Positions 8,896-41,200 of a stretch of 64,000 nucleotides of DNA are shown here, piece after piece (positions within the stretch are counted from its first letter, which is position 1; each line of letters begins with the position of its first letter). Both the position numbers and the translations under genes were made by a program. The notes under the pieces are model-generated. The model had not been told where the DNA came from. It saw only the letters and a program-made list of their open reading frames with translations, and ran no database searches. The stretch is taken from positions 124,001 to 188,000 of the IMG/VR virus record IMGVR_UViG_3300005613_000001. The stretch is one strand, 5' to 3'.

Positions 8896-9279
8896 TTACG
8901 GTCCATTTGGTGGTTCAAAAACTAAACCCGTATAAATAAATCCGCCTACAAAACCCAAAGTCCAAATAACGCATCCGACAACCTTAAGAGAACACATAAA
9001 AAAAGGTGATGCTGCTATTAACGATGTTAAAATTGCCCCCAATACCATCGCCATGCACAACACCAAAGAATCCGGTCGCATTGGTGCTACTTTGTTGCTA
9101 ACTGTAAGGATGAAACCTATTATGCAGGCTGTGATAAAATAAACCGCCGACCAAATTGAACAGCCTGCCATGTGGTAAGAACAAATAAAAAAGGGCAAAC
9201 TAGACATGACAGCAGCGGCTAGACCGCCCATACAACTTAAAAGCCATATCCTTGCCGGTGGGCGTGATTCAGTTCTCAC
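8896..9279 (-). CDS. Membrane protein with internal duplication (4 TM)
   Basis: Two repeats ending S.PFF.CS...GC.IW. Confidence 0.6.
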   Translation of the reverse strand: MRTESRPPARIWLLSCMGGLAAAVMSSLPFFICSYHMAGCSIWSAVYFITACIIGFILTVSNKVAPMRPDSLVLCMAMVLGAILTSLIAASPFFMCSLKVVGCVIWTLGFVGGFIYTGLVFEPPNGP

Positions 9280-10202
9280 TTTTTAACTCCTAAATGAATC
9301 TTAATCCAACCATCATCATCAATTTCAACGGCATCAAAAACCTTCTTTACCTTATCAACATCAATCGCCTTAACTATCTCTTCAATCTTCTGAACCGTTT
9401 CCTTGTCAAATAAACGAAATATGTCCAGAAGACCTTGTACTTGGGCTTTCTGCTGCGCTACGAGATGCTTGTCAAGTTCCTCCGGTACAAGTGTTATCAA
9501 TTTTTCCTTAACCGCCTCATATGTCAATCCAACATCTTTTAAAATTATCTGATGATGGGAAGTTGTCTTTTGACCAGTTGTGGCATCCCGTTGCGGCCTT
9601 AAAAGACCTAAAAGAAGATGCTCGGTGCCCACATAGAGTATCCCACTATCATCAGTAGTTGCTTCCTCCATAGCATAATCCATTAGCGTTTTAGCTGCCG
9701 GAGATAACGGAATCTTCCCAATAGGGCTAGCCTCCGAGCCCTTCACCATCAATTTCTCTAATCTGCATTCAATGTCTGCCGGGGATACCTTCATGGATTC
9801 CAAAAGCTTAACAGCAACCCCACCACGCTCTCTTACTATTCCAAAAATAATGTGCTCTAAATCAACTTGCATGTGATTATAACTACGTGCAACTTGATTG
9901 GCTATTGACATCACCTTGCGGGCACGATCAGAAAATCGTTCGTACATACTTGTCTCCCTAAGTTTATTCACACCAGCACCGATTTCTTTTCGGTGCGATG
10001 GCAGTCCATTCGTAACCGGAAGCACTACACTAAAGGCTCTGTTGCAACGGGAATTGCTACCTTCTACTTTCTCCGTAGCCTCTTTTTCTACATCGCCAGT
10101 TCCACACAAAAAAACATTATTCCCTATGTGGGTAACTACGTCACTTCCACACAAAGGGCAGAATTTTATCCGATGCTTCTTATAATGCTTCCTCATCTTC
10201 AT
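9276..10202 (-). CDS. Zn-ribbon + stand-alone ClpC-type N-terminal (Clp repeat) domain, no ATPase
   Basis: MYERFSDRARKVM...EHIIFG...YVGTEHLLLGLL. Confidence 0.8.
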   Translation of the reverse strand: MKMRKHYKKHRIKFCPLCGSDVVTHIGNNVFLCGTGDVEKEATEKVEGSNSRCNRAFSVVLPVTNGLPSHRKEIGAGVNKLRETSMYERFSDRARKVMSIANQVARSYNHMQVDLEHIIFGIVRERGGVAVKLLESMKVSPADIECRLEKLMVKGSEASPIGKIPLSPAAKTLMDYAMEEATTDDSGILYVGTEHLLLGLLRPQRDATTGQKTTSHHQIILKDVGLTYEAVKEKLITLVPEELDKHLVAQQKAQVQGLLDIFRLFDKETVQKIEEIVKAIDVDKVKKVFDAVEIDDDGWIKIHLGVKK

Positions 10203-10292
10203 TCCTATGCGGCCTGGGACTTGCGGGGTTGCTCACCCACCAGTTGCGCGCAGGGGCTTGCTAGCCAACCCCGCTGGCTCCCAGAGTCAAAG

Positions 10293-10363
10293 TGCGCCTG
10301 GGGGGAATCGAACCCCCACATTCAGCTTGGGAAGCTGACACGCTACCACTACATCACAGGCGC
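10293..10363 (-). tRNA. tRNA-Gly(CCC)
   Basis: TCAGC-TT CCC AA-GCTGA. Confidence 0.92.
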
Positions 10364-10382: not shown

Positions 10383-10410
10383 ATTATACCATAGGTTCTC
10401 CGTATGTTAA
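10383..10410 (-). promoter_or_regulatory. Sigma70-type promoter
   Basis: TTAACA-16 nt-TATAAT with extended TG. Confidence 0.6.
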
Positions 10411-10447: not shown

Positions 10448-10474
10448 AAAAAAACGGGGGGCATTTAGCCCCCC
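10448..10474 (-). terminator. Intrinsic terminator ending tRNA cluster 1
   Basis: GGGGGGC-TAAAT-GCCCCCC-GTTTTTTT. Confidence 0.8.
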
Positions 10475-10476
10475 AG

Positions 10477-10548
10477 TGGAGATGGTGGGATTCGAACCCA
10501 CGACTTCGACACTGCCAGTGTCGCACGCTCCCGCTGCGTCACATCCCC
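10477..10548 (-). tRNA. tRNA-Ala(GGC)
   Basis: CGACA-CT GGC AG-TGTCG; G3:U70. Confidence 0.92.
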
Positions 10549-10553
10549 ATCAG

Positions 10554-10628
10554 TGGAGGTTACGGGACTCGAACCCGTGAATCCTCTGCCTTGCAAAAGC
10601 AGCGCTCTCCCAACTGAGCTAAACCCCC
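10554..10628 (-). tRNA. tRNA-Ala(TGC)
   Basis: CTGCT-TT TGC AA-GGCAG; G3:U70. Confidence 0.92.
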
Positions 10629-10632
10629 AAAG

Positions 10633-10730
10633 TAGGACTGGAAGGAATCGAACCTTCTCCTAGAGTTAATCTGACTCTACCTTTCGGCCAAGGTTATAAG
10701 CCTTGTGTGCTTCCATTACACCACAGTCCC
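10633..10730 (-). tRNA. tRNA-Ile(TAT) with long two-hairpin variable region
   Basis: CAAGG-CT TAT AA-CCTTG; V region GCCGAAAGGT + AGAGT..ACTCT; 98 nt. Confidence 0.75.
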
Positions 10731-10766
10731 TAATGTTACAACTCCCGCATGCAATTCAGAATGACG

Positions 10767-10838
10767 TAGGCGATGTTGGTTTCGCACCAACGGCCTCTAC
10801 TGTGTGAAAGTAGCGCTCTTCTCCTGAGCTAATCGCCT
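10767..10838 (-). tRNA. tRNA-Val(CAC), T-loop TGCGAAA
   Basis: CTACT-TT CAC AC-AGTAG. Confidence 0.82.
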
Positions 10839-11023
10839 AAAGTATAATTCTCCCAATCGTTTAATTCTCCAACGGTATAATTCTCCCCTATGCTCTTTGC
10901 CCACCAAATTCTACATTCAGTACAAACGTATTTATAAACGTAAATAAGCTCTCTCGTCACTTTATCTGTTACGTGTTTTGTATCTCCGCATTTTGGACAA
11001 AGTGGTAATTCTAAAATACTCAT
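10829..11023 (-). CDS. Small Zn-ribbon protein (likely start MSILELPLC)
   Basis: CPKC...CTEC; the longer ORF-track version reads through a tRNA remnant. Confidence 0.55.
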   Translation of the reverse strand: MSILELPLCPKCGDTKHVTDKVTRELIYVYKYVCTECRIWWAKSIGENYTVGELNDWENYTLGD

Positions 11024-11025
11024 AG

Positions 11026-11091
11026 CTGACCCACTAGGATTCGAACCTAGACTAAAAGAACCAGTCTGCCGCACCATTTGGCTTCGCTCCC
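11026..11091 (-). pseudogene. Chimeric tRNA remnant (non-Gln 5' half fused to a tRNA-Gln 3' half)
   Basis: Perfect T-arm CTAGG-TTCGAAT-CCTAG and D-arm, but acceptor and anticodon strands do not pair. Confidence 0.6.
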
Positions 11092-11096
11092 ATTCT

Positions 11097-11327
11097 TCAC
11101 TCTTCAGAACACCCACACCCTTCCATAAATTCATCCCATTCAAAAGGATGAAATTGTTTATTTAGTGCATTAGCAATTCTATTACACACTCTACTCCACT
11201 GGGAATCTGTCAAATCTTGGAGTGTGATTTCTTTTCTGGCTAATGCCAATTCCTCGGCAAACTCATCCAAATTAATTGGTGTCAGATTTAAGCATTCCGC
11301 TAAATCTTCTAAATACAAATTTTCCAT
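11097..11327 (-). CDS. Acidic hypothetical protein
   Basis: ORF track. Confidence 0.55.
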   Translation of the reverse strand: MENLYLEDLAECLNLTPINLDEFAEELALARKEITLQDLTDSQWSRVCNRIANALNKQFHPFEWDEFMEGCGCSEE

Positions 11328-11454
11328 TTATTTCTTCTTTTCTACCCACTTAACTCCAGGGTCTATTCCCTGCCGTTCCAATTCGCGGGCAATTCTCACA
11401 TCCCTCACTGCCAACTTCTTTTCTTTTTTACATCTAACCAAAAATTTTTCATAG

Positions 11455-11528
11455 TGGGCCGAACAGGAATTGAACCTGTGACTTCTTCCATGTCACGGAA
11501 GCGCTCTAGCCAACTGAGCTACCGGCCC
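11455..11528 (-). tRNA. tRNA-Val(GAC)
   Basis: CTTCC-GT GAC AT-GGAAG. Confidence 0.92.
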
Positions 11529-11562
11529 GTAACGACACGACAAATTTTTTTCGCCTCTTATA

Positions 11563-11689
11563 AATTGCTCGACCAGTGCGCTGTTACACCAAAGGGCTTA
11601 AGAGGACAGGGTTGCCTCTGCACTTCCGTATATCCCATTCTTTAAATGATGGCTACCTCTAAGCCAACATCCTGGTTGTCTATGCAATT
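11563..11689 (-). ncRNA. 23S rRNA H42-H44 (L10/L11-binding, GTPase-associated centre) mimic with 47-nt insertion
   Basis: AGACAACCAGGATGTTGGCTTAGAGGTAGCCATCATTTAAAGAA...GGTGTAACAGCGCACTGGTCGAG vs E. coli AGACAGCCAGGATGTTGGCTTAGAAGCAGCCATCATTTAAAGAAAGCGTAATAGCTCACTGGTCGAG; closed by AATTGC/GCAATT. Confidence 0.8.
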
Positions 11690-11735
11690 CGGGCTACTTA
11701 CCCAATGCGCATGTCTTCCTATTTGCCGTGCCGAG

Positions 11736-11807
11736 TAGGCGATATTGGTTTCGCACCAATGGCCTCCGCTGCGTGAAAGCGGCGCTCTTCTCCTGAGCTA
11801 ATCGCCT
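11736..11807 (-). tRNA. tRNA-Val(CAC), second copy, T-loop TGCGAAA
   Basis: CCGCT-TT CAC GC-AGCGG. Confidence 0.82.
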
Positions 11808-11811
11808 AAAG

Positions 11812-11882
11812 TTGTCCCGCTAGGATTTGAACCTAGACTAATTGATTCAGAGTCAATCGTGCTGCCGTTACACTACGGGACA
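11812..11882 (-). tRNA. tRNA-Gln(CTG)
   Basis: ATTGA-CT CTG AA-TCAAT; U1-A72. Confidence 0.92.
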
Positions 11883-12372
11883 ATTCCGCATGTTTTTCTC
11901 TATGACACCTACAACAAAGCAAGTCACACTTGTCTAATTCTGACCTGGCCCGCTTTAAATTCCAATTTTTAATTGATTTAAAGTTAGGATCTTTTTCTTT
12001 TGAATCTCTATGATGAAATTCTAGTGCGGCAATACATTTACTATAACCACATACCACGCACTTTCCACCTTTATACCCCACCATTTCTTGCTTATTTTTC
12101 CTTGCTCTCTCAATCAATCGTTGATTGGTGCAAGATTTACAACGCGATTGGAATTCTCCTGTATCTGACCGTCTATAGAATTCCGATTCATTCTCTTCAC
12201 CACATGAACACTTTGCAACAAAACGTCTTTTATTATATGGTAAATTATTTGTTGCTAACCCATACTTTCGCAGCCAATACCTTACTTTACATTGAGAAAC
12301 ATTAAAATAATTTGCAATTTCTCTTTGTGACAAACCCTTGTCAATCAGTTGTTTCATTTTTATTTTATCCAT
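11833..12372 (-). CDS. HTH + HNH homing endonuclease
   Basis: CVVCGYSKC..ALEFHH...KCDLLCCRCHREKH; reads 50 nt into tRNA-Gln. Confidence 0.82.
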   Translation of the reverse strand: MDKIKMKQLIDKGLSQREIANYFNVSQCKVRYWLRKYGLATNNLPYNKRRFVAKCSCGEENESEFYRRSDTGEFQSRCKSCTNQRLIERARKNKQEMVGYKGGKCVVCGYSKCIAALEFHHRDSKEKDPNFKSIKNWNLKRARSELDKCDLLCCRCHREKHAELSRSVTAARLTLNQLV

Positions 12373-12421
12373 ATACTAATACAGTACGTAGATAAAATAA
12401 ATTATTTGCCAACTGAGCTAG

Positions 12422-12495
12422 TAGGCAGAGCCGGGCTCGAACCGACGACCTTCTGGATGTAAACCAGACGCTCTTCCAACCTGAGCTATCCGCCT
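12422..12495 (-). tRNA. tRNA-Val(TAC)
   Basis: TCTGG-TT TAC AT-CCAGA. Confidence 0.92.
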
Positions 12496-12501
12496 CTAAA
12501 A

Positions 12502-12792
12502 TTAATCTCCTCTAAAATGTTCTATTCTCCCATCTGGGTATTCCAAAATAATTGTATTATCTTTCATATAGGTAATAGGTTTCCCTACTTTAAACGCCTC
12601 AATTTTTGCTTTTAGTCCAACTTGTTCTAATAGTAATTTAGCTTGTGCTTTCTGTATTCTTGCAAGTTCTTCTTCTAATTCTTGGATTCTTGCCTCATAT
12701 TCCACGCTACATTTCGGGCATTCATCGCAAAAATCAGGCATCATTTTCTTCCATTTTAAGAATTCTTGATTCACCACCTGTTTGACGATCAA
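12502..12792 (-). CDS. Small coiled-coil protein (start uncertain)
   Basis: CxxCxxC then heptads. Confidence 0.5.
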   Translation of the reverse strand: MIVKQVVNQEFLKWKKMMPDFCDECPKCSVEYEARIQELEEELARIQKAQAKLLLEQVGLKAKIEAFKVGKPITYMKDNTIILEYPDGRIEHFRGD

Positions 12793-12941
12793 TTACGACT
12801 ACTTTTACAACATCATGCCGTTGAGCTACGCCTTTAGCTGTTTCCCTTGCTACCTCGGAATCATTGATATAGTCAATGATCGTATCCGGCCCATCCCCAG
12901 GATGAACGGCATCAATTCTAAATCTTTCACCACAATCTCTT

Positions 12942-13130
12942 TTAGGATAAAATGTCATTCTTCTCCCTCATTGGTTCTGCTGAGTACACTTTTTCAGCGA
13001 GTGTAGACACTAGAATTCTAGCGGCATCCAATTTTCCATCAGCCGTGACTTGGGTATGCCTAATCTTTTTGTCTTTTTTAGATTTGTATTTTACTGCAAA
13101 TCTGGTCCAATTTCTTTTCATGGTTGTCAT
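12942..13130 (-). CDS. Small basic hypothetical protein
   Basis: ORF track. Confidence 0.5.
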   Translation of the reverse strand: MTTMKRNWTRFAVKYKSKKDKKIRHTQVTADGKLDAARILVSTLAEKVYSAEPMREKNDILS

Positions 13131-13158
13131 TTTACTAAAACTCTATCTTTAATACAAG

Positions 13159-13229
13159 CACCCCGCCAGGGAGTCGAACCCCATCTTACGGTTCCGAAGA
13201 CCGTCGTGCGTCCATCACACTCGCAGGGC
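13159..13229 (-). tRNA. tRNA-Arg(TCG)
   Basis: ACGGT-CT TCG GA-ACCGT. Confidence 0.88.
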
Positions 13230-13234
13230 AAAAG

Positions 13235-13308
13235 TACACCCGGCAGGACTCGAACCTGCAACCTTCTGATTCGTAGTCAGATGCTCTAATCCATTGAGCT
13301 ACGGGTGC
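13235..13308 (-). tRNA. tRNA-Arg(ACG)
   Basis: TCTGA-CT ACG AA-TCAGA. Confidence 0.93.
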
Positions 13309-13505
13309 ATTAAACCTATAGTTTCTATTCTCCCACTCTCAAAGTCAATTCTTATCATTTGCCGGAAGCCAATTTTACGACCGCAACAAGTGCAATAGAA
13401 TGGAACTTTCCCATTCTTTGCTTTCCCACGATTAAACAATCGCTTACCTCGCCCATGAAGACGATCTTGGTAACCGTTATTGCAGTCGCATTCAAGTATT
13501 TTCAT
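13299..13505 (-). CDS. Small Cys-containing phage protein; stop inside tRNA-Arg
   Basis: CDC...YQDRLHGRGKRLFN...CTCC. Confidence 0.6.
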   Translation of the reverse strand: MKILECDCNNGYQDRLHGRGKRLFNRGKAKNGKVPFYCTCCGRKIGFRQMIRIDFESGRIETIGLMHP

Positions 13506-13678
13506 TTAATTTCTCAATTATAATCCACATGAACCCTACTTTCAACATAGGATTAATGGTTTCATAGAGTTCATGGAGGCATTTTAAACAAAGATTTGCT
13601 TTACAAACTTGTTTGCCTCCCCAGCTACAAAACACGCAGCTTCTTCTTTACATTCATGTGTATCACATTCAATCATAG

Positions 13679-13751
13679 TACCCCCGGTAGGATTCGAACC
13701 TACGTCTGAACAGTTTAGAAAACTGTTGCCTTTCCTCTAGGCTACAGGGGC
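13679..13751 (-). tRNA. tRNA-Arg(TCT)
   Basis: ACAGT-TT TCT AA-ACTGT. Confidence 0.92.
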
Positions 13752-13753
13752 AT

Positions 13754-13839
13754 AAAAAAATCCGCTTCAGGTTTTCCCTGAGCGGATTTGATTATCTTAT
13801 CGGCTCAGGAACTTCCCGAGCCTTCTTAGGACTCGGAAA
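13754..13839 (-). promoter_or_regulatory. Attenuator 1 (alternative hairpins + intrinsic terminator)
   Basis: TTTCCGAG/CTCGGGAA, GGCTCGGG/CCTGAGCC, CCTGAGC/GCTCAGG, ATCCGCTCAGG..CCTGAAGCGGAT-T7. Confidence 0.8.
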
Positions 13840-13926
13840 TTACGTGGCGACCTGCATGGCGCGTACAGCCATCGCTCGCCTTACGGCTGCTATAGCTCTA
13901 CGTTCTTGTGCCTGTATAATAGTCAT
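13840..13926 (-). CDS. Leader peptide 1 MTIIQAQERRAIAAVRRAMAVRAMQVAT
   Basis: GGAG 8 nt upstream of ATG; stop abuts attenuator hairpin 1; below ORF-track cutoff. Confidence 0.75.
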   Translation of the reverse strand: MTIIQAQERRAIAAVRRAMAVRAMQVAT

Positions 13927-14071
13927 CTCATAATCTCCGTGTTATCTATATAGTAGTTAAGTTCTAAAAAAAAGAACCTTGTTTTTGGCCGGGTCAGAGG
14001 TCTTCCTGGTTGAGAGGGGGCGTGACCCGGCTGTTGGTGCATCCGGCTGGGTTGTCACCCCGCCTCTTTAG

Positions 14072-14099
14072 ATCATACCACAGCGACCCGTCATGTCAA
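14072..14099 (-). promoter_or_regulatory. Sigma70-type promoter
   Basis: TTGACA-16 nt-TATGAT, extended TG. Confidence 0.7.
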
Positions 14100-32054: not shown

Positions 32055-32141
32055 GGCGAGAACCCATCTTCCTGGCCGCCTCTGTCACCGCCAAGTGGGT
32101 GCGATTAAAAGCCGCACCACAGAGCGGTCGCTACCATCTAG

Positions 32142-32215
32142 TCGGGGTGAAAGGATTTGAACCTTCGACCTTCTGCTCCCGAAGCAGACGCGCTCCCAGG
32201 CTGCGCTACACCCCG
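32142..32215 (-). tRNA. tRNA-Pro(CGG)
   Basis: TCTGC-TT CGG GA-GCAGA. Confidence 0.92.
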
Positions 32216-32688
32216 TAATGTATTTCTCCGTGGCAGTTTTTACAAATTAATATGCATTTATCTAACTCTTTTTTAACTCTTTCAAAAGACCATCGCCGCA
32301 TCTTTCTCCAATTTGGGTCTTTTTTATCTGGGTCTTTATGGTGGAAGTCAAGAGAACCCAAACAATTATTGTACCCACACTTTTCGCATCTGCCACCTTT
32401 GTATTCAACGAACTTCTTTTTATTCTTCCTAAACCTTTCTAATTGATACCGCTTTCGACATTTTTTACACTCAGAATACCTACCAGGATGAAACATTTCT
32501 TTTTTCGTTTCTCCACACTTACAATTATGTTTTCTCCCAGTGGCTAAATTATGTTTCCCGAGCCAATATCTAACTGAAGTTTGTGATTTGTTCGTAATCT
32601 TAGCTATTTGACGTGTCGAATAGCCTTGTTCGGTAAGTTCTATTAATTGTTGCTTGTCCATACTATTATATAGTACGGACAAGCTCAT
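32206..32688 (-). CDS. HTH + HNH homing endonuclease
   Basis: CEKCGYNNC..SLDFHH...KCILICKNCHGEIH; stop inside tRNA-Pro. Confidence 0.82.
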   Translation of the reverse strand: MSLSVLYNSMDKQQLIELTEQGYSTRQIAKITNKSQTSVRYWLGKHNLATGRKHNCKCGETKKEMFHPGRYSECKKCRKRYQLERFRKNKKKFVEYKGGRCEKCGYNNCLGSLDFHHKDPDKKDPNWRKMRRWSFERVKKELDKCILICKNCHGEIHYGV

Positions 32689-32761
32689 TTTGGATAAATA
32701 AAATCAACCAATTTGAACTAAGATCGCCACCCGCTCCCACAGGAGCAGGTGGCGATTTGGA

Positions 32762-33079
32762 TTATCCTAGCAATTCCTTTGCCTTAGACAGAATCGTTCC
32801 GTTAATTCTAATGTCATGGACATCATCCTTCTCCCTTAACAACTCTTCCACGGTAATGATGGAACACCCAGTTTCCCAGGAATCCATCGGCCCGTAGCAG
32901 GAGCAATGACCTAAATCCTTTACCCAGACTCTTCCATCCTTCCCTAGAGCAACAGCCTGTCCAGATCCGTCATAGCACCCAATCTCGTAGTCGTGAATTA
33001 ACCACTCAAAATCAGCATCCGATACTTCATTTAAGTCCCAATCACACAACTCATCACCTAACTGATAAATCTTCATCAT
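32762..33079 (-). CDS. Hypothetical phage protein
   Basis: LGHCSCYGP motif. Confidence 0.6.
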   Translation of the reverse strand: MMKIYQLGDELCDWDLNEVSDADFEWLIHDYEIGCYDGSGQAVALGKDGRVWVKDLGHCSCYGPMDSWETGCSIITVEELLREKDDVHDIRINGTILSKAKELLG

Positions 33080-33283
33080 AGTACCTCCAATTAAAGGGTT
33101 GAAACATCTGAGTTTCTAACGGCCCATCAATTGAGGCTACAAATTAGATTTATCTTCCTCCATCCCAATCCGAATGCAAATCGGGAAAATCACTCATTGT
33201 TACTCCTGTGCCTTCATCTACATCTTTATCAGAAAAAGCATAGGAAAATAATTTGCACAAATCTTTCAACCATCTAAACATAG

Positions 33284-33357
33284 AGCTACCAGTGGGATTC
33301 GAACCCACGGCCTCTTGTTTACGAAACAAGCGCTCTGGCCGACTGAGCTATGGTAGC
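33284..33357 (-). tRNA. tRNA-Thr(CGT)
   Basis: CTTGT-TT CGT AA-ACAAG. Confidence 0.92.
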
Positions 33358-33456
33358 AATCTATTCTACACGACATTCATCTAATCGCCCTAAATCTCTT
33401 AGTCGAACCTGCCAAATCCAAGAATTAATTTTAACGTCTTTTATTTCTTGGATTTA

Positions 33457-33531
33457 CGAGAGCGACGGGACTTGAACCCGCAATCCCCAGCGTGACAGGC
33501 TGGTGCGTTAAACCAATTACGCTACGCCCCC
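33457..33531 (-). tRNA. tRNA-Asp(GTC)
   Basis: CCAGC-CT GTC AC-GCTGG. Confidence 0.92.
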
Positions 33532-34029
33532 TTTAACATATAATTTAGGGAAAGGCACATCAGGAATCGGCAGAGAGAAAAAATCGCACAGCTTATCCCA
33601 ACCATCGCCCTCAATTATATTCATTCTCAATAGCGGCTTATCTTGAAAAAAATCAGCCACCGCTGGGTAATGACTATTATATATTCTTACCCATTTCTTA
33701 AAATCAACCTTTAACCAATTCCCCTTATAGTTTTTTTTGTTTCTGTTTCGTTTTACATGACCCTCTCTGCTTCTAAGCCAACTTCGCAACTCACGCTCTG
33801 TTAAAATAAATTTAGCACCAGGAAACTTCCTGTGTAGCTCTCTAAAGTGGAAAGGAAGGTTGCCATCAAGATACGCATTAACCCTCTTTGTTCCAAAATC
33901 TAAATTTTCTAATAAAGCATTGTTTTTATGTTCATCATGTTGTGGTGTCCACCCCAATATTCTAAGTGCCGCACTCAAAGAATGCGTACCTGTTTTATTC
34001 AAGCCTATACAAAATACAAGAGGTTTCAT
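33517..34029 (-). CDS. Sulfotransferase family (Sulfotransfer_4-like)
   Basis: FCIGLNKTGTHSL...AKFILT.R...W..S...DGWDKLCDFF. Confidence 0.82.
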   Translation of the reverse strand: MKPLVFCIGLNKTGTHSLSAALRILGWTPQHDEHKNNALLENLDFGTKRVNAYLDGNLPFHFRELHRKFPGAKFILTERELRSWLRSREGHVKRNRNKKNYKGNWLKVDFKKWVRIYNSHYPAVADFFQDKPLLRMNIIEGDGWDKLCDFFSLPIPDVPFPKLYVKGGVA

Positions 34030-34034
34030 CTAAG

Positions 34035-34105
34035 AAGCCCCGCCTGGAATCGAACCAGATTCTTGAGGACCAAAACCTCATGTGATACCAATATACTACA
34101 GGGCC
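34035..34105 (-). tRNA. tRNA-Gln(TTG)
   Basis: TGAGG-TT TTG GT-CCTCA. Confidence 0.82.
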
Positions 34106-34109
34106 AAAG

Positions 34110-34178
34110 TGGAGGTAAAGGGAGTTGAACCCTTCGTCCGTCTGTGCGAGAGACAGCGCCTACCCGTAGAGTACCCCC
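34110..34178 (-). tRNA. Compact tRNA-Ala(CGC): tiny D-loop, 6-bp anticodon stem, 69 nt
   Basis: GGGGGTA/TACCTCC with G3:U70; CTGTCT-CT CGC AC-AGACGG. Confidence 0.7.
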
Positions 34179-34185
34179 TACTTAG

Positions 34186-34259
34186 AGCTACCGGAGGGAT
34201 TTGAACCCTCGGCCTCTTCATTACCAATGAAGCGCTCTGGCCTACTGAGCTACGGTAGC
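34186..34259 (-). tRNA. tRNA-Thr(GGT)
   Basis: CTTCA-TT GGT AA-TGAAG. Confidence 0.92.
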
Positions 34260-34265
34260 TTCTCT

Positions 34266-34871
34266 TTATCTTCTCCCAGATGTTAATTGTTCCATAAAGG
34301 TTTTAAATGGGGCTCTGTAAAACGTAGGAGCCTTATTCATTATTTCATATAACTTCTCTAAAGTCAATTCAGACCACTTGTTAGCAGTCATTCTTTGACC
34401 ATAATCAGAAAAGCCTCTGAATTCACTCTGCCAAAACTTCGTGACCATTGCATCTAAATCTAATTTAGGTTGCCAGTAGCAATGATCCCAGTCCAAACAG
34501 CACGGTCCAAATATCTTTTGGTCAAAATGAGCCGGGAAAGGCATACGACTAAGCGTTGCTTCCATAAGCTCTTCCTTGCTCAATTCCGACAAATCCTCAA
34601 AAGCATATCCGCCATATAAATATCCTCCCTCTCTATACGGCTGGAATGCAAACACCAAATGAGGAAATTGAACATATATGTGCTTCTTCTGGTTATAAAC
34701 AGTTCTCCTTTTCGGTGGATACAATCTTACTTCATGACCATCCTGCACCAGCAAAATCTTGTACTCAGGATCGCTTTTTGCGAAATCACTCTTCTTTACG
34801 GCCTTCTTTCGTGGTTTTCGTGTTCGTGGAGTTCGCTTCTTTGCACTTTTAACAGCTTCGCTCATTTCCAA
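34266..34871 (-). CDS. Divergent prokaryotic E2 family D-like protein
   Basis: PPKRRTV...VQFPHLVFAF...YLY.GYAF...MPFP....CC. Confidence 0.45.
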   Translation of the reverse strand: MEMSEAVKSAKKRTPRTRKPRKKAVKKSDFAKSDPEYKILLVQDGHEVRLYPPKRRTVYNQKKHIYVQFPHLVFAFQPYREGGYLYGGYAFEDLSELSKEELMEATLSRMPFPAHFDQKIFGPCCLDWDHCYWQPKLDLDAMVTKFWQSEFRGFSDYGQRMTANKWSELTLEKLYEIMNKAPTFYRAPFKTFMEQLTSGRR

Positions 34872-34908
34872 AACTCCTTTTCAATTCAATACACTCAGGC
34901 TATACCAA

Positions 34909-34993
34909 ATACAACGTCAGGATTCGAACCTGAACTTCTGGCTCCAATTCGCTTATGCTTTAGCCAGCGTGCTACCATTACACTACAATCGTA
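34909..34993 (-). ncRNA. tRNA-Gln-like RNA with ~13-nt insertion in anticodon loop
   Basis: Gln-type D-arm GTGT/GCAC, CTGGC/GCCAG stem, 20-nt loop ending TTGGA, intact T-arm. Confidence 0.6.
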
Positions 34994-35182
34994 CCGCTTT
35001 CAGAACGCTACTGAAATCTAACTACTCAAACTAACTACTAACTATGGACTATTGAGTATTGACCTGTCCAGGCCCTTCCCCTGGCTCACGGTTTTTATAG
35101 CCTAAGCGAATGTTATCAATACCTTTCATCCATAGGGTTCATTAACTCTTTCATCAAATTATTTCACGAACCTACTCACAAG

Positions 35183-35270
35183 CTCTGCGGGCTGGACTCG
35201 AACCAGCGATGGGGCTTTCGCCACTCCTGATTAACAGTCAGGCTCCTGCTACCAACTCGGATACCGCAGA
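35183..35270 (-). tRNA. tRNA-Asn(GTT) with long variable arm
   Basis: CCTGA-CT GTT AA-TCAGG; V-arm GGC-GAAA-GCC; 88 nt. Confidence 0.8.
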
Positions 35271-35275
35271 TTAAG

Positions 35276-35349
35276 CGACGGTGACGGGAATCGAACCCGC
35301 GCCCTCTTCCGTGACAGGGAAGCGCTCTTACTCTCTGAGCTACACCGCC
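35276..35349 (-). tRNA. tRNA-Asp(GTC)
   Basis: CTTCC-CT GTC AC-GGAAG. Confidence 0.92.
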
Positions 35350-35354
35350 TCAAT

Positions 35355-35729
35355 TTATTTTACACTTCTTCCTTTTACCTTCCCAGTTTTTGGTTTCTTG
35401 GCATCTTCAACCATTTTCTTAAAAGCATCTACTTCCTTTGTTGCCTCTTCGATTGTAACCTCATGACCGTAATTGCTTCCAAAATCACAAGATTCACAAC
35501 CACTGTTGGCGTAATCATCTACATCAATCTTATCTGTGCCAAACAACTCAGATAATGCCTTCAACTTCCCAAAACTCAAACGTGGGGCTTCATACATGGC
35601 ACCCCATTTAATTACAAGAGTACCATCAGTCCGCACCGAATACTCAAGATATGGCTTTGACCACTCTCTATCATCAGCAAGGATTTCCTCAATCCTGTGG
35701 CCGATCCATCTTGTCTTTTCTTTTTTCAA
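35355..35729 (-). CDS. Hypothetical phage protein
   Basis: SGCESCDFG motif. Confidence 0.6.
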   Translation of the reverse strand: MKKEKTRWIGHRIEEILADDREWSKPYLEYSVRTDGTLVIKWGAMYEAPRLSFGKLKALSELFGTDKIDVDDYANSGCESCDFGSNYGHEVTIEEATKEVDAFKKMVEDAKKPKTGKVKGRSVK

Positions 35730-36414
35730 TTTTTTCTTCTAACTTTCTTGCGTGTTCTGCTTTTTGTTCTTCTAATTGTTGTGCTGCGGCCTCTCTATCC
35801 GCTTTAGCTTCATCAAAATCCTTGAACAAAAGATTTCCTATTTGGAATCTGTCAATCGTCTCCAATCTGCCTTTCTCATCCTTATAGCACAACTCTTGTT
35901 CCGTTTCATGCACTACCTCAACATAGGAACCTTCTTCTGCCTGTCTGCCACCCCACAATAGGAACAACTTCTTACCCACGAAAGAATCATTCTCATCTAA
36001 TTCCGTTTCTATCCCACGACGTTCAAAGAATTGTGGCATATCTTTTGTAGATAAAGCCGTTTTTCGTTCATAATGCACTTGCTCTATCTTTGTTAATTTA
36101 CCATCAACGAAAGTCGCCTCAAAAGTTACAGACTCAGCATCTTCACCATCATAAGTGTATTCTCCTACTGGACCGCATGCAGATATTGTGCTTCCATAAA
36201 ATTCCACTACACCTGTGAAATTATCATAATTATCTGCTATGTTTGAAAACGGCCACTTGGTATCATCTCTCGCTTCTTCATCAAGCGTACCGTCCGCTGT
36301 TATGATTATAGTTGCTAAGGTGCAACCAAAATCCTTAGTTTGATATTCACCTACTAACTCCACCGGCTCGCCAGGAAGAGGATAGTCGCATCTTAAATAA
36401 TCAAACATTCCCAT
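35689..36414 (-). CDS. Hypothetical phage protein
   Basis: MGMFDYLRCDYPLP...YQTKD...FVDGKL phage-type N-terminus. Confidence 0.65.
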   Translation of the reverse strand: MGMFDYLRCDYPLPGEPVELVGEYQTKDFGCTLATIIITADGTLDEEARDDTKWPFSNIADNYDNFTGVVEFYGSTISACGPVGEYTYDGEDAESVTFEATFVDGKLTKIEQVHYERKTALSTKDMPQFFERRGIETELDENDSFVGKKLFLLWGGRQAEEGSYVEVVHETEQELCYKDEKGRLETIDRFQIGNLLFKDFDEAKADREAAAQQLEEQKAEHARKLEEKIEKRKDKMDRPQD

Positions 36415-36673
36415 CTAGTTGCTCCATTTTTCTCGTAATAATTGAGTAATCTTTATCATCCTTCGCCTTTTTGACAGATACATGAACATTGCCTACTAAA
36501 AATTCAACAGGTTCAACCTCATTAACTTTGACTCGACCTAAAGCTAATTCATCAGTTCCTTCAGCTATTTCCTTTCTTAATTTTCTACTCTCTATAGAAA
36601 GTGATGCAACTTCCTCACCAATCTGTATGAACCGCTTAACCTTCTCAATGAATTCAGCCTTGTCCATCTTCAT
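36401..36673 (-). CDS. Hypothetical protein
   Basis: ORF chain. Confidence 0.55.
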   Translation of the reverse strand: MKMDKAEFIEKVKRFIQIGEEVASLSIESRKLRKEIAEGTDELALGRVKVNEVEPVEFLVGNVHVSVKKAKDDKDYSIITRKMEQLDGNV

Positions 36674-36683
36674 TTCCTTTCAG

Positions 36684-36755
36684 AGCTACCGGAGGGATTT
36701 GAACCCACAACATTCACATTACAAATGTGACGCTCTGCCATTGAGCTACGGTAGC
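36684..36755 (-). tRNA. tRNA-Thr(TGT)
   Basis: TCACA-TT TGT AA-TGTGA; one T-stem mismatch. Confidence 0.88.
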
Positions 36756-36876
36756 AATTGCGGTTAATCTTTTGGCTTAGATCGTGCTGCCATCACTGGT
36801 TGTCAAAAGCCGCAACCTATCAGAATGATAGTTTTGACAACCACCAAAAAACCGCCGCAATTGGCATTTTATCAAG

Positions 36877-36952
36877 CTGCGAGGGTAGGAATCGAACCTA
36901 CGAACCCCTGGTTCAAAGCCAGGTATTTCTTACCAACAGAAACTACCTCGCA
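36877..36952 (-). tRNA. tRNA-Gln(TTG)
   Basis: CCTGG-CT TTG AA-CCAGG; U1-A72. Confidence 0.88.
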
Positions 36953-36966
36953 AAATTTAATTTTAG

Positions 36967-37041
36967 AGGCTGGTCTGGGATTTGAACCCAGGACAATCTG
37001 ATTAACAGTCAGACGCTCTAACCGGACTGAGCTAACCAGCC
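36967..37041 (-). tRNA. tRNA-Asn(GTT)
   Basis: TCTGA-CT GTT AA-TCAGA. Confidence 0.9.
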
Positions 37042-37796
37042 ACCATAAATTCTTTTCTCACTTTTTCTGGAGGTTTTCTCCAATCCAACTTTATTTTTCC
37101 CGCTCTCAACTTACTTTGGTGACCAAAATTCACACTATAGTTGTCATCATGCAAACACCACATGGTACTTCTAAATGGAATTCTTGCAGGGTTAAAAAGT
37201 TTATGAACCTGATGCCTTCCCAACCAACTTACGGCCCACTCAAAATCATTCATATTACTTTTAACATAAGAAGCCTTAACGGCAACTGTGCTTCCACAAT
37301 GAAGGTTTAAATCATCGTTCGGAACCATCTTTCCCGTTTGCGTGTTTAAAATATATCCTCTATTTGAAATTACAACTCTTTTTTGTCGTTTCATCAAATC
37401 TCCTACAAGGCGATTTGATATTAAATCATCTGCATCCATCATGAAAAAATACTTTGGGTCCATCTCCAATGCAGCTTCTACTGTTAATAACCTCTTTTTA
37501 GCCTTATCTACATTATGTTCTCTGGTTATTGCCTGCCAGTGAGACAAGCTTGTTTCTTCCAATGGTGCGATATAGGGTTGAGGATGCGAAATTGGATCTG
37601 TGCCCATTTCCAAAATCGTCACCTTTTCATGGTCTATATCATCGTCCAAAGGCAACTTCTTGTTTGCACCAACAAAAATATGAAACCTATCATCCCTGCT
37701 GTTGCAAACACTTCTAATTGTATTGTTTAATAATCTCCAAATTTCTGCGTAGTTGCAGTTCTCAGGGTGTTTTACTGGAATTACAAAAGCTATCAT
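37032..37796 (-). CDS. GT-A-fold glycosyltransferase-like
   Basis: FVIPVKHP...DKAKKR...MMDADDLIS. Confidence 0.7.
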   Translation of the reverse strand: MIAFVIPVKHPENCNYAEIWRLLNNTIRSVCNSRDDRFHIFVGANKKLPLDDDIDHEKVTILEMGTDPISHPQPYIAPLEETSLSHWQAITREHNVDKAKKRLLTVEAALEMDPKYFFMMDADDLISNRLVGDLMKRQKRVVISNRGYILNTQTGKMVPNDDLNLHCGSTVAVKASYVKSNMNDFEWAVSWLGRHQVHKLFNPARIPFRSTMWCLHDDNYSVNFGHQSKLRAGKIKLDWRKPPEKVRKEFMVAG

Positions 37797-37818
37797 TTTT
37801 CTTTCTGGTTAAAGTAAG

Positions 37819-37900
37819 TAGGGCCGGTGGGTAACGCTCCCACATTGCGGTTTCCCGCCCTGATTAAGAGTCAGGTGCATTGCTTGTCTGCCACGACCCC
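37819..37900 (-). tRNA. tRNA-Lys(CTT) with long V-arm and aberrant T-loop AGCGTTA
   Basis: CCTGA-CT CTT AA-TCAGG; V-arm GCGG-GAAA-CCGC. Confidence 0.7.
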
Positions 37901-37905
37901 AAATT

Positions 37906-38478
37906 TTATTCTCCTGCTTGTTCTAAAATCTTCTTTGCCTTTTCAATTTCCTTAGCCTTCTTCTTTTCCGCTCGCTTCTTAGCCGCTTCGGCCCTCTTTG
38001 CCTTTTCCCTCTTCAATCTTGCCACTTCAGCATCATAAACCTTCTTCTGCTTTGCCGTAAACAACTTCTTAAGGGAAGGCTTCGTCATAGCCTGTACAAT
38101 TTGTACATTTTCATCGGCTAATGCTCGTATCGTATTCTCCCGCATTCTGGTTACATCAACCTCACTTGGAGAACCCCAACTATTTCGTCTCCTGTCTATG
38201 TAATAAAACTTCTTCCCCGCCACCAGCTTTTCTTCACGATCTTGGATAGCCTTCTTATCCACCCAGCCAAGTGAAGCAAGCAAATTCAAAACAAACTCAT
38301 TCTTTTCCTCAATCGCCTTCCTAATTAAAGCAGCCACTTCGCCTTGAGTTTCATAGTTCCCTATCAAATCAACTAAACTAACTTCTTGCACGGTGACTTC
38401 AGGATCATAGGAACCATAATCATCAGCACCCTCACAATAATGTTCTTCCGTACTAACCAAAATTAACTTACGTGACAT
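37906..38478 (-). CDS. Hypothetical protein with Lys/Ala-rich helical tail
   Basis: ORF chain. Confidence 0.6.
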   Translation of the reverse strand: MSRKLILVSTEEHYCEGADDYGSYDPEVTVQEVSLVDLIGNYETQGEVAALIRKAIEEKNEFVLNLLASLGWVDKKAIQDREEKLVAGKKFYYIDRRRNSWGSPSEVDVTRMRENTIRALADENVQIVQAMTKPSLKKLFTAKQKKVYDAEVARLKREKAKRAEAAKKRAEKKKAKEIEKAKKILEQAGE

Positions 38479-38962
38479 TTCTGTTCCTCAAACATTCATA
38501 TAGTGATTGTTCTTCACTATCAGTAGGGGTCACCAGAGCTTTATCCTCTATAATCAAAACTTTTGCATGTATCTTTCTATGGCAATTAGAACAAACACAA
38601 ATGCATTTCTTGATTTCTTCAATTAGTTTTTCAATACTCTTCTTAGCTACCCACGCCGATATGTTATCATTTTTATCATTTACATGGTGGAAATCAAGAC
38701 AACAGGGTTCCGTTTCTCCACAAAAACAACACCCTTCCCTCTTTTTTATTTCCTCAACTACTAATCTTATTTTTTGTTTCTTAATCCTGTTGTATTCTGT
38801 ACTTTTGTGCAAAACCACATCGCGGTTGGTTTTGTAATATTCCTTGGCATTTTGGATAGCACAAATCTTACAGTATGAGTGTAATCCATCCTTCTTGCCA
38901 GGACTTTTATGAAACTCCTCAATGCTTTTTTCTTTGTTACATCTTTTACATCGCTTAACCAT
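38468..38962 (-). CDS. HNH homing endonuclease with N-terminal Zn finger
   Basis: CKRCNKEK..EF...YCKIC; CCFCGE..PCCLDFHH...KCICVCSNCHRKIH. Confidence 0.82.
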   Translation of the reverse strand: MVKRCKRCNKEKSIEEFHKSPGKKDGLHSYCKICAIQNAKEYYKTNRDVVLHKSTEYNRIKKQKIRLVVEEIKKREGCCFCGETEPCCLDFHHVNDKNDNISAWVAKKSIEKLIEEIKKCICVCSNCHRKIHAKVLIIEDKALVTPTDSEEQSLYECLRNRNVT

Positions 38963-39026
38963 AATAACCTCCTAAGTTATTATAGTTAAGCTAGATTAAA
39001 ATTCCCTCTATTTTTTTAAACCAAAG

Positions 39027-39100
39027 TGAGCCCAGCGAGACTCGAACTCGCAGTCTACGGATTAAAAGTCCGTTGCATTAGCCTATTATGCTATGGGCTC
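39027..39100 (-). tRNA. tRNA-Lys(TTT)
   Basis: ACGGA-CT TTT AA-TCCGT. Confidence 0.92.
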
Positions 39101-39106
39101 AATCAG

Positions 39107-39187
39107 TAGGGCCGGTGAGATTCGAACTCACATTGTCCTTTCGGACCCAGATTAAAAGTCTGGAGCATCCCTATCTGCCACGACCCC
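39107..39187 (-). tRNA. tRNA-Lys(TTT) with long V-arm
   Basis: CCAGA-CT TTT AA-TCTGG; V-arm GTCC-GAAA-GGAC. Confidence 0.8.
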
Positions 39188-39256
39188 TTCAATATTGGGG
39201 TCTGCGTTTCAATCTGTAAGGGTCACGAATCATTTTTAATTCTCCTGTTATTAAAG

Positions 39257-39331
39257 TCGGGGTGAAAGGATTTGAACCTTCGGCCCCTGGTCCCCCAGAC
39301 CAGTGCTCTATCCAGGCTGAGCTACACCCCG
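39257..39331 (-). tRNA. tRNA-Pro(GGG)
   Basis: CTGGT-CT GGG GG-ACCAG. Confidence 0.92.
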
Positions 39332-39334
39332 TAG

Positions 39335-39403
39335 TAGAGCGTGCTGCCATTACACTACCGCCGCCTTCCGGCACCGGACGGGAATCGAACCCGCACTTCT
39401 CCA
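39335..39403 (-). ncRNA. Circularly permuted tRNA-like module B (T-arm, loop-closed acceptor, D-arm)
   Basis: TGGAG AAGT GCGGG-TTCGATT-CCCGT CCGGTGCC-GGAA-GGCGGCGG TA GTGT-AATGGCA-GCAC G CTCTA. Confidence 0.75.
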
Positions 39404-39458
39404 TTGGACTACTGGAAATAAATTTCCAGGCGAGAATTGAACCCGCACTTACTTCCAA
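39404..39458 (-). ncRNA. Permuted tRNA-like module C (D-arm missing)
   Basis: TTGGA..AAGT GCGGG-TTCAATT-CTCGC CTGGAAA-TTTA-TTTCCAG TAG TCCAA. Confidence 0.55.
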
Positions 39459-39459
39459 G

Positions 39460-39544
39460 AGACGATGGTGGGATTCGAACCCACGCGGAGCTAATGCTCG
39501 ACAGTTTTGCAGACTGTTGCCTTCAACCACTCGGCCACATCGTC
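39460..39544 (-). tRNA. tRNA-Cys(GCA) with long V-arm
   Basis: ACAGT-CT GCA AA-ACTGT; V-arm GAGC-ATTA-GCTC; U73. Confidence 0.82.
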
Positions 39545-39548
39545 ATAC

Positions 39549-39619
39549 AGAGAGCGTGCTACCCTTAACACCACCCCCGCCTTACGGCGGTGACGGGATT
39601 CGAACCCGTACTTCTCTCT
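39549..39619 (-). ncRNA. Circularly permuted tRNA-like module A
   Basis: AGAGAG AAGT ACGGG-TTCGAAT-CCCGT CACCGCC-GTAA-GGCGGGGG TG GTGT..GCAC G CTCTCT. Confidence 0.75.
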
Positions 39620-39633
39620 TTCTCACTTTTAAG

Positions 39634-39707
39634 TCGGAATGCCTGGAATCGAACCAGAACCTCTTGCTTATCAGGCAAACGTGCAGAAACCACTACACCA
39701 CATTCCG
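39634..39707 (-). tRNA. tRNA-Ile(GAT)
   Basis: TTTGC-CT GAT AA-GCAAG. Confidence 0.85.
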
Positions 39708-40277
39708 ATGTTCCTTTCGGTGACAATTCGTACAAAGAACTTCACACTTGTCTATTTCCTCTTTCAAATAATCCAAAGAATGACCTGATGCTAAAAGGTA
39801 CGCAATTGTAAACCTTTTGTCTTCAAGATGATGAAATTCTAAACATCTAGAGTCGTCTTCACTACAAGCTTTACATTTGGACAATTTGATAAAATCAATA
39901 AACCATCTTCTTTTTTTAATTCTCCTTTCTCCAAAATTTCTCCAATTTGATCCATCTTCTATAATTAAAGGCTCATGTCTCTTTCGGTGACAATTACCAC
40001 AAATAACTTCACACTTGCTTATCTCTATTTGAAGTTTTTCTATTGTGGTAGCATTCCGTATAAGCTGACTAACTGTGTTCGATTTTCCATTTACATGATG
40101 AAAGTCCAAACAAATCTTATCATCTATTCCACACTCACAACACCTTGTCTTAAGAGAATAAACATACTCATTGTTTCTTCGCCTCCGACTTTTTATTCCT
40201 TCTCTGTATTTGTCTTTGTTTTTTAAATAGTGTTTCTTTTGAGCCTCTTTTTGTCTTTGTTTGTCTTTATAGGGCAT
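39693..40277 (-). CDS. Homing endonuclease with two tandem HNH domains
   Basis: Two copies of C..C.....CL.FHH...KCEV.C.NCHRK.H. Confidence 0.82.
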   Translation of the reverse strand: MPYKDKQRQKEAQKKHYLKNKDKYREGIKSRRRRNNEYVYSLKTRCCECGIDDKICLDFHHVNGKSNTVSQLIRNATTIEKLQIEISKCEVICGNCHRKRHEPLIIEDGSNWRNFGERRIKKRRWFIDFIKLSKCKACSEDDSRCLEFHHLEDKRFTIAYLLASGHSLDYLKEEIDKCEVLCTNCHRKEHRNVV

Positions 40278-40334
40278 ATTGAACCTCCTCTATTATATAG
40301 AGTAAGGTTCAATACATTTTACCACCCTTTTTAG

Positions 40335-40410
40335 GGTGGCAGAGCGGAATCGAACCGCCGCCAACCTCGTTCACAGCGAGGCTCAGGAAACCAACACCTG
40401 ATCCTGCCAC
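40335..40410 (-). tRNA. tRNA-His(GTG)
   Basis: CCTCG-CT GTG AA-CGAGG; C73; G-1 apparently not encoded. Confidence 0.82.
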
Positions 40411-40412
40411 AG

Positions 40413-40487
40413 TGGGAATACTTGGATTCGAACCAAGGGCCTCATCCTTATCAGGGATGCGCTCTAAACCGACTGAGCTATATTCCC
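40413..40487 (-). tRNA. tRNA-Ile(GAT)
   Basis: CATCC-CT GAT AA-GGATG. Confidence 0.92.
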
Positions 40488-40509
40488 AGTTTTAATTCCT
40501 CCTTTTAAG

Positions 40510-40586
40510 TCGGGGCGAAAAGATTCGAACTTTCGGCCTCCTGGTCCCAAACCAGGCGCTCTTAAACCAGGCTGAGCTACGCCCCG
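40510..40586 (-). tRNA. tRNA-Pro(TGG)
   Basis: CCTGG-TT TGG GA-CCAGG. Confidence 0.92.
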
Positions 40587-40598
40587 GTGGAGCCACCA

Positions 40599-41054: not shown

Positions 41055-41200
41055 GGTTCGGTCTCCTTTTCTTCTTTTATAAAAACTTTACCACACCACT
41101 TACATCTGAATTCGTTACAATCACATTCACAAAAAACGAATTCATTATCCCCACATGAGGGGCAAATCGGTTCTTCTTTTTTCATTTCATCCTTTCTGAG

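Follow-up and report, generated by a model that had tools for sequence, protein, structure and literature searches.

The DNA analysed here, referred to as the window, comprises 64,000 nucleotides (positions 124,001 to 188,000) of IMG/VR record IMGVR_UViG_3300005613_000001, a 527-kb contig of a huge phage. Nearly all genes of the window are located on the minus strand. ARAGORN identified 41 tRNA genes and Rfam a further one; 11 of the tRNAs make up array 1, and 26 tRNA genes make up array 2. Each array was found to be preceded by a promoter, a short leader open reading frame (ORF) and a chain of overlapping hairpins ending in an intrinsic terminator. These two elements, named att1 and att2, are examined as candidate attenuators of the tRNA arrays. 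The coordinates of all features are collected in Table 1.

An original prediction, made from the sequence alone, had described att1 as a 28-codon leader with a GGAG ribosome binding site (RBS), followed by four overlapping pairings (A:B, B:C, C:D and D:E), the last of these being a terminator with a run of seven T residues placed 2 nt before tRNA-Arg(TCT). This anatomy was confirmed. The ORF and its stop codon are present, the GGAG, a Shine-Dalgarno (SD) sequence, is situated 9 nt upstream of the leader ATG, and the tRNA starts 2 nt past the T-run. When folded, the segment from A through D adopted A:B+C:D (−30.1 kcal/mol, z=−4.6), and the segment from B through the T-run adopted B:C+D:E (−35.5 kcal/mol, z=−6.1); for each conformer, 0/200 dinucleotide shuffles were as good. 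Two parts are added to the description, as the element also includes a sigma70-type promoter and a structured 5′ untranslated region (UTR) with the hairpins GGGGUGAC...GUCACGCCCC and GGUUCU-U7-AGAAC. The whole 326-nt leader region of att1 gave a folding z of −5.8. A tmRNA or other known RNA was considered for the 5′UTR and received no support from ARAGORN or Rfam.

The tRNAs of array 1 are, in order, Arg(TCT), Arg(ACG), Arg(TCG), Val(TAC), Gln(CTG), Val(CAC), Val(GAC), Val(CAC), Ile(TAT), Ala(TGC) and Ala(GGC). The 98-nt Ile tRNA was missed by ARAGORN, but was recognized by Rfam (57.6 bits), with the anticodon loop CUUAUAA corresponding to Ile(UAU). The unit had been proposed to end at a terminator at 10448 and to hold only Arg, Val, Gln, Ile and Ala tRNAs. 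The closing hairpin was found as expected and the tRNA content was correct; the unit is not restricted to tRNAs, since ORFs of 62−179 aa lie between them. The claim that 22 of the 27 non-initiator codons of the att1 leader encode the five amino acids served by this array was also borne out, with all five tRNA types covered (binomial p=5e-9 for an expected R/V/Q/I/A fraction of 0.27, as found among the proteins encoded in the window). Of 4132 stretches of equal length from real proteins of the window, none had as many as 22 residues in the set. The array boundaries were partly the analysts' choice, and adding Gly(CCC) and Glu(TTC) to the att1 set gives 23/27 by hand count. Directly behind the array 1 terminator, a promoter (TTAACA-16-TGnTATAAT, 10383-10410) drives tRNA-Gly(CCC) (10292-10363) and a 308-aa Clp_N protein (9276-10202, minus strand). 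The att1 leader contains no Gly codon, which fits this tRNA being outside the att1 unit.

The second element, att2, was flagged by a terminator scan (43023-43001, 200 nt past a TTGACA promoter). Its C (CCTGAGCC) and D (CCGCTCAGG) segments follow the A:B hairpin and have cores identical to those of att1. The motif CTGAGC-N5-35-GCTCAG occurs twice in the 64 kb against an expected 0.06, each time behind a promoter and a GGAG-preceded ORF. The first genes behind att2 encode a basic 68-aa product and a PTH2-type peptidyl-tRNA hydrolase, followed by array 2 with tRNAs for Glu, Gly, Trp, Pro, Ile, His, Cys, Lys, Asn, Gln, Thr, Asp and Ala, plus one without an isotype call. The att2 leader has 35 of its 41 residues in the array 2 set and covers 13/13 tRNA types (joint p ~3e-4). 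The pair of the basic 68-aa ORF and PTH2 is kept behind the orthologous attenuator of another locus, L056 (8213-8815), where the PTH2 gene was called in two pieces (124+81 aa) in the source annotation.

To find further copies, scans patterned on the terminator, on the B-C-D cores and over a metagenome collection were combined with a covariance model. At least ten further unique copies were identified on huge-phage and metagenome contigs (loci L123, L125/L259, L056/L343, L139, L189, L191, L218, L229, L239 and L252), giving 12 counted members with att1 and att2. Contig sizes of 572, 373/596 and 120 kb are represented, and there are short metagenome contigs as well. Each copy is located immediately upstream of a tRNA array on the same strand, and a tRNA-Met gene precedes most of them. 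A second subfamily, consisting of att1, L139, L191 and L218, has its own promoter. In the one direct comparison made, L123 and the window had only the tRNA-Met and the attenuator element in common at the DNA level; 254-aa ORFs in the arrays of both were considered as homologues and found not to be homologous. Among 185,579 bacterial and archaeal species genomes there were 82 pattern matches, 0 of them with leader, terminator or tRNA context. The first loose DNA pattern, with 17 specified bases, returned only random matches from viral contigs, except L056, and most of the metagenome-scan matches were chance ones among the matches listed. Covariance model R1, run over the window and extended loci, yielded no additional copy except L229.

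Ten full-length members were then folded in two states, one with the footprint of a ribosome at the stop codon removed and one with A free and E untranscribed. With the footprint removed, the D:E terminator formed in 10/10 members, together with B:C in eight; the footprint covers B too in L125 and L139. With A free and E untranscribed, A:B+C:D formed in 10/10. The antiterminator C:D overlaps the 5′ arm of the terminator and is predicted to be mutually exclusive with D:E in all ten. The comparison of folds with and without the ribosome-masked segment, which had been suggested in the original prediction, thus gave the predicted OFF/ON alternation throughout. A GC-rich terminator hairpin with T6-T7 lies between the leader and the regulated genes in all members.

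The position of the stop codon is equally constant, being inside A or within about 10 nt of it in 12/12 members. Five copies (L056, L123, L125, L139 and L239) have the stop codon included in A, which reads CCTGAaCC, CCTTGAGC or an equivalent sequence. The last three leader codons of L229 contain A, directly before the stop, and in the remaining copies the stop is 0−6 nt upstream of A. A terminating ribosome would accordingly mask A in every copy. For a further segment, Z, comprising the SD/start region or early codons, pairing with A was predicted in the folded members when the leader is not translated, most clearly in nine and weakly in L125 (z from −2.5 to −8.8). Compensatory changes are seen in the flanks of A and B, which were left free in the search patterns: AUUCUUCCUGAGC/GCUCAGGGAGAAU in L139, AUCCUUGAGC/GCUCAGGGAU in L125 and AUCUGAACCGA/UCGGUUCAGGU in att2. 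Likewise, D of L229 reads GCTTGGG, with E altered to keep the pairing. The placement of the stop codon supports ribosome position, stalled or at the stop codon, as what would select the fold. Between tRNA-Met and the leader, L229 carries an extra terminator-like hairpin and a CCTGAACC...GGCTCAGG hairpin resembling A:B (1100-1040 and 1225-1085, minus strand), which could represent a remnant or an additional level of control.

No Rfam family reached its gathering threshold for att1 or att2. The 3′ part of att2 gave sub-threshold leader matches to Phe_leader (RF01859, 25.7 bits against a threshold of 55) and Trp_leader (RF00513, 20.4 against 41), and a third scoring 17.1 against 50; the first two, although weak, suggest an attenuator-like architecture. 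For att1, no sub-threshold leader match (Phe_leader, Trp_leader, Leu_leader RF00512 and others) was obtained. A T-box riboswitch was not matched in either element, even at E<=10.

The composition of the leaders was next compared with the content of the arrays, two of which were extended by exact-protein look-ups. In L123, 23/28 leader residues belong to the array set and 11/11 tRNA types are covered (p ~9e-5), and in L125 the corresponding values are 37/38 and 15/15 (p ~2e-4). With att1 and att2, this makes four leader/array pairs that are each significant, and the true pairing of these four was the best of 24 permutations by a likelihood score penalizing large sets. Across the 12 members, 14/14 testable amino acids were commoner in leaders whose array contains the corresponding tRNA (permutation p<5e-5); with att1 left out, 7/7 were. 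The frequencies with the tRNA present and absent were 0.075 and 0 for Phe, 0.098 and 0 for Pro, 0.135 and 0.012 for Ala, and 0.105 and 0.024 for Arg. The original prediction had named a failure of homologous leaders to track cluster composition as a refutation; tracking was observed. Conversely, Leu and Tyr were depleted in the pooled leaders relative to the phage proteome (0.23x, p=1.6e-8 and 0.21x, p=3e-5, respectively), and none of the arrays examined was found to contain a tRNA for either amino acid. In the truncated arrays, the amino acids of the first tRNAs always occur in the leader. The first tRNAs of L218 are Pro, Pro, Asp and Ile(TAT), and its leader has an ATA codon; those of L191 are Glu, Gly and Glu, and its leader has five Glu and three Gly residues; and those of L239 are two Phe, with three Phe in the leader.

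The leaders also bear marks of a coding sequence. In 12/12 members the leader frame is open and ends within A or close to it, and in 11/12 it is a complete ATG-started ORF of 28−46 codons, L239 being cut at its 5′ end. A recognizable SD was seen in nine members. Between the att2 and L056 leaders, 25 residues are identical, ten of them encoded by different codons; the values are 18 and 12 for L191 and L218, and 16 and five for L125 and L239. Homologous leaders thus keep residues while switching codons, indicating selection on the encoded amino acids, which points indirectly to translation of the leader ORFs.

Based on these features, each element is postulated to control the phage tRNA array behind it by ribosome-mediated, leader-peptide-dependent attenuation of transcription and to act as a sensor of tRNA supply, and we consider this the likely function. 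The his/trp/ilv-type attenuation model that had been put forward for att1 is supported in every part that sequence analysis can address. Transcription would start at the sigma70-type promoter and the short leader ORF would be translated. A fast ribosome would reach the stop codon and cover A, and B:C and D:E would then form, terminating transcription before the tRNA genes (OFF). A ribosome delayed anywhere in the leader would leave A free as B emerges, favouring A:B with the C:D antiterminator, and the array would be transcribed (ON). In untranslated RNA, Z:A would free B for pairing with C and transcription would again terminate. As the leader is composed almost wholly of amino acids served by the array, the signal for delay would be a shortage of exactly those charged tRNAs. 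The products of read-through, namely the phage tRNAs and, at att2, PTH2, would relieve the delay and so provide negative feedback. The trigger would presumably be depletion of host tRNAs, for example through tRNA-targeting defences, anticodon nucleases or phage-induced host shut-off. On balance, we favour the wider view that the multivalent attenuators of huge phages serve as a tRNA homeostat, with replacement tRNAs and peptidyl-tRNA hydrolase made only while those tRNAs limit translation.

Several points weigh against the attenuator explanation. The parts of the elements, their alternative folds, conservation, coding constraint and composition tracking are established at the level of sequence, and actual translation, termination and read-through at the elements are inferred. 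The match between leader and array holds at the level of amino acids and not of codons. Matching rare codons had been claimed for the att1 leader, but the array anticodons decode its codons no better than expected under a null of synonymous codons (p=0.09); over four leaders the p-values were 0.09−0.78, in a test that is low-powered and ignores U34 modifications. A pure sensor of tRNA species might be expected to show such a match. The fit is looser in L056, with 30/41 residues in the set and 12/12 types by hand count. The tracking statistics are uncorrected for relatedness, with att2/L056 and L125/L239 being homologous pairs, and several arrays end at contig or locus ends. Conservation of the B, C and D motifs is partly ascertainment, because the search pattern was fixed on them. 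The arrays contain protein genes and promoter-like sites (e.g. 13545-13517 and 42340-42311), so that not all tRNAs need read-through. Lastly, ordered leader motifs are kept (WQxGITCPC, PKQGE, GHDN and VxVRP), which would fit a functional micropeptide too.

Three other explanations were considered and rated lower. The first is a general sensor of translation stress or coupling: a ribosome-dependent attenuator that, like the antibiotic-responsive leader attenuators, reports overall elongation speed or transcription-translation coupling and not the supply of particular tRNAs, the leader composition being a by-product. The lack of codon-level matching is in keeping with this, and leaders of 28−46 codons using 8−19 different amino acids would sense nearly any slowdown; moreover, the first regulated enzyme at att2 is PTH2, a general rescue enzyme. 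Such a sensor leaves unexplained, however, why the att1 and att2 leaders of one genome differ so much, each fitting its own array, why Leu and Tyr, both common in the phage proteome, are depleted about 5-fold, and why Phe, Pro, Arg, Ala, Glu and Cys occur in leaders in step with their tRNAs. We regard it as unlikely.

Still less probable is that the leader is a micropeptide gene with its own terminator, the arrays running from their own promoters or by basal read-through and the alternative hairpins being incidental. A plain gene end would not need a chain of exclusive helices and a stop codon placed within or beside A, kept in all folded members, or the Z:A pairing predicted in most. The two leader subfamilies encode very different peptides with the same switch, the composition of the leader follows the downstream tRNAs, and the terminator is only 2−45 nt from the first tRNA in several members. 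These observations were taken to outweigh the promoter-like sites within the arrays and the kept residue order and motifs, with synonymous changes, between homologous leaders. Finally, a factor-dependent riboregulator, in which a protein or RNA (e.g. a tRNA, T-box style) binds the repeated GCTCAGG/CCTGAGC and the ORF is irrelevant, is very improbable: the B, C and D cores are indeed nearly identical in otherwise unrelated phage DNA, and GCTCAG presumably resembles the tRNA D-arm consensus, but such conservation would arise in any case, as every segment has two pairing partners, and the search pattern itself accounts for part of it, while the ORF, SD and stop position are conserved and under coding constraint and neither a T-box nor another Rfam family was matched.

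As putative leader-peptide attenuators, the phage elements share with the his and trp leaders of enterobacteria a short leader ORF, probably translated in the phages too, mutually exclusive hairpins leading to an intrinsic terminator, and ribosome position as what would decide the fold. With Z included there are six pairing segments, as in the his attenuator, and the Z:A pairing makes the arrangement formally like his, in that no or fast translation is predicted to terminate and a delayed ribosome to read through. Unlike the his and trp leaders, the phage elements would regulate tRNAs, small ORFs and PTH2 rather than biosynthesis or aminoacyl-tRNA synthetase genes. They have no run of one regulatory codon, so that the entire leader would be the sensor, and it is a ribosome halted on a stop codon within or beside A that would establish the OFF state. 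They also remain below the gathering scores of the Rfam leader families. The ilvGMEDA (Ile/Leu/Val) and thr (Thr/Ile) leaders likewise sample several amino acids, whereas the phage leaders sample five to about 15, and the set corresponds to the tRNA species of the array and not to pathway end products. In E. coli, attenuation at the pheM leader adjusts pheST, and with it a part of the translation machinery, to the supply of charged tRNA; pheM senses one amino acid and controls a synthetase, while the phage element would sense many and control the tRNAs themselves. T-box elements also tie the choice between terminator and antiterminator to tRNA status and control translation-related genes, but they bind uncharged tRNA directly and need no ORF, in contrast to the conserved ORF of the phage element. 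In erm and ARE-ABCF leaders, a ribosome stalled on the leader ORF similarly refolds the RNA behind it, and the gene switched on in this way overcomes the block to translation; those leaders rely on drug-dependent arrest motifs, whereas the phage leader mirrors a tRNA set and no arrest motif was identified in it.

The mechanism class is classical; what is new is the tRNA-array target, the multivalent 'census' taken by the whole leader, and the viral setting. To our knowledge, the examples of leader-peptide attenuation described over about 50 years have been confined to operons for amino-acid biosynthesis and synthetases. The original prediction had remarked that multi-tRNA attenuators of phage tRNA arrays were undescribed, and the literature search returned no account of tRNA genes, phage or cellular, being preceded by a leader-peptide attenuator; one candidate mention proved irrelevant. 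What purpose phage tRNAs serve has been a matter of debate for decades; codon compensation and replacement of degraded host tRNAs are among the proposals, and we know of essentially nothing on how phage tRNAs are regulated. Phage tRNAs have been proposed as an escape from tRNA-targeting defences (PMC10264068). If correct, the present explanation would provide direct genomic evidence for arrays deployed in response to tRNA shortage and would extend leader-peptide attenuation to tRNA genes and to viruses. The element would also be a compact, re-programmable part, in which a new leader confers a new sensed input. The phages are uncultivated, yet the idea can be tested with simple reporter constructs.

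Table 1. Features of att1, att2 and the tRNA arrays in the 64-kb window
Feature	Position	Strand	Description	Basis
att1 promoter	14072-14099	−	TTGACA-16-TGgTATGAT; sigma70-type, 11/12 match, extended −10	Promoter scan
att1 5′UTR	13940-14065	−	About 135 nt; two stable hairpins	Folding
att1 segment Z	13921-13939	−	SD GGAG (13938-13935) and start region	Predicted pairing with stop/A region when leader untranslated
att1 leader ORF	13840-13926	−	28 codons, MTIIQAQERRAIAAVRRAMAVRAMQVAT; stop TAA (13842-13840)	ORF calling
att1 segment A	13829-13839	−	TTTCCGAGTCC; begins right behind stop codon	Folding
att1 segment B	13813-13822	−	GGCTCGGGAA; partner A or C	Folding
att1 segment C	13802-13811	−	TTCCTGAGCC; partner B, or D as antiterminator	Folding
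att1 segment D	13777-13789	−	AAATCCGCTCAGG; 5′ arm of terminator	Folding
att1 segment E and T-run	13754-13771	−	E 13771-13758, CCTGAAGCGGATTT; T7 13760-13754; 3′ arm and tail of intrinsic terminator	Folding
Array 1	10476-13751	−	11 tRNAs (first, Arg(TCT), starts at 13751) and interspersed small ORFs	ARAGORN, Rfam
Array 1 terminator	10448-10475	−	Intrinsic terminator closing array 1	Terminator scan
att2 promoter	43223-43251	−	TTGACA-17-TACTAT with TG	Promoter scan
att2 leader ORF	43075-43203	−	42 codons, MLVSVQKNQVCWQGITCPCATITPKQGETNGRTGHEDNAPAP; GGAG RBS; stop TGA	ORF calling
att2 switch	42997-43074	−	A 43074-43065, B 43054-43045, C 43038-43029, D 43023-43011, E and T-run 43010-42997	Folding
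First genes behind att2	42306-42922	−	Basic 68-aa ORF (42716-42922); PTH2-type peptidyl-tRNA hydrolase (42306-42725)	ORF and protein comparison
Array 2	32141-42302	−	26 tRNA genes and interspersed ORFs	ARAGORN, Rfam
tRNAs with long variable arm or insert	42213-42302, 35182-35270, 37818-37900, 39106-39187, 39459-39544, 10633-10730	−	Glu 90, Asn 89, Lys 83 and 82, Cys 86, Ile(UAU) 98 nt	Sequence

Relatives of the phage were sought through its DNA and proteins. Among INPHARED phages, the region matched at the tRNA level only and a 449-aa protein of the window had no protein match, so there is no cultured relative in INPHARED beyond tRNA-level similarity. A search anchored on the Clp_N protein gave no match outside its own contig, and two exact-protein look-ups gave no match. 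The search anchored on PTH2 identified a relative, L002, which is 44% identical and non-syntenic.

Several tRNAs with class-I anticodons in the window have long, stem-forming variable arms or inserts, which is unusual for their isotypes; escape from tRNA-targeting nucleases is one example of a conceivable function. A tRNA-like gene at 34908-34994 (minus strand; Rfam, 41 bits) has an enlarged anticodon loop or possible intron, and its ARAGORN isotype call failed ('aaag'). ORFs of helix-turn-helix (HTH)/HNH type, resembling homing endonucleases, are located among the tRNA genes in the window (11833-12372, minus strand, within array 1), in L125 (8602-9033) and in L056 (10881-11435). The ORFs between tRNA genes vary from phage to phage, also between phages with a conserved attenuator.

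Two suppressor-type tRNAs, with anticodons UUA (reading TAA) and CUA (reading TAG), were found at 43265-43425 (minus strand), preceded by tRNA-Met (43905-43979) and a promoter matching the consensus at 12/12 positions (44048-44021, minus strand). As they are upstream of att2, they lie outside its control. The att1 leader stop is TAA; if it were suppressed, the frame would continue over A, B and C to a TAA at 13794-13792, 3 nt before D.

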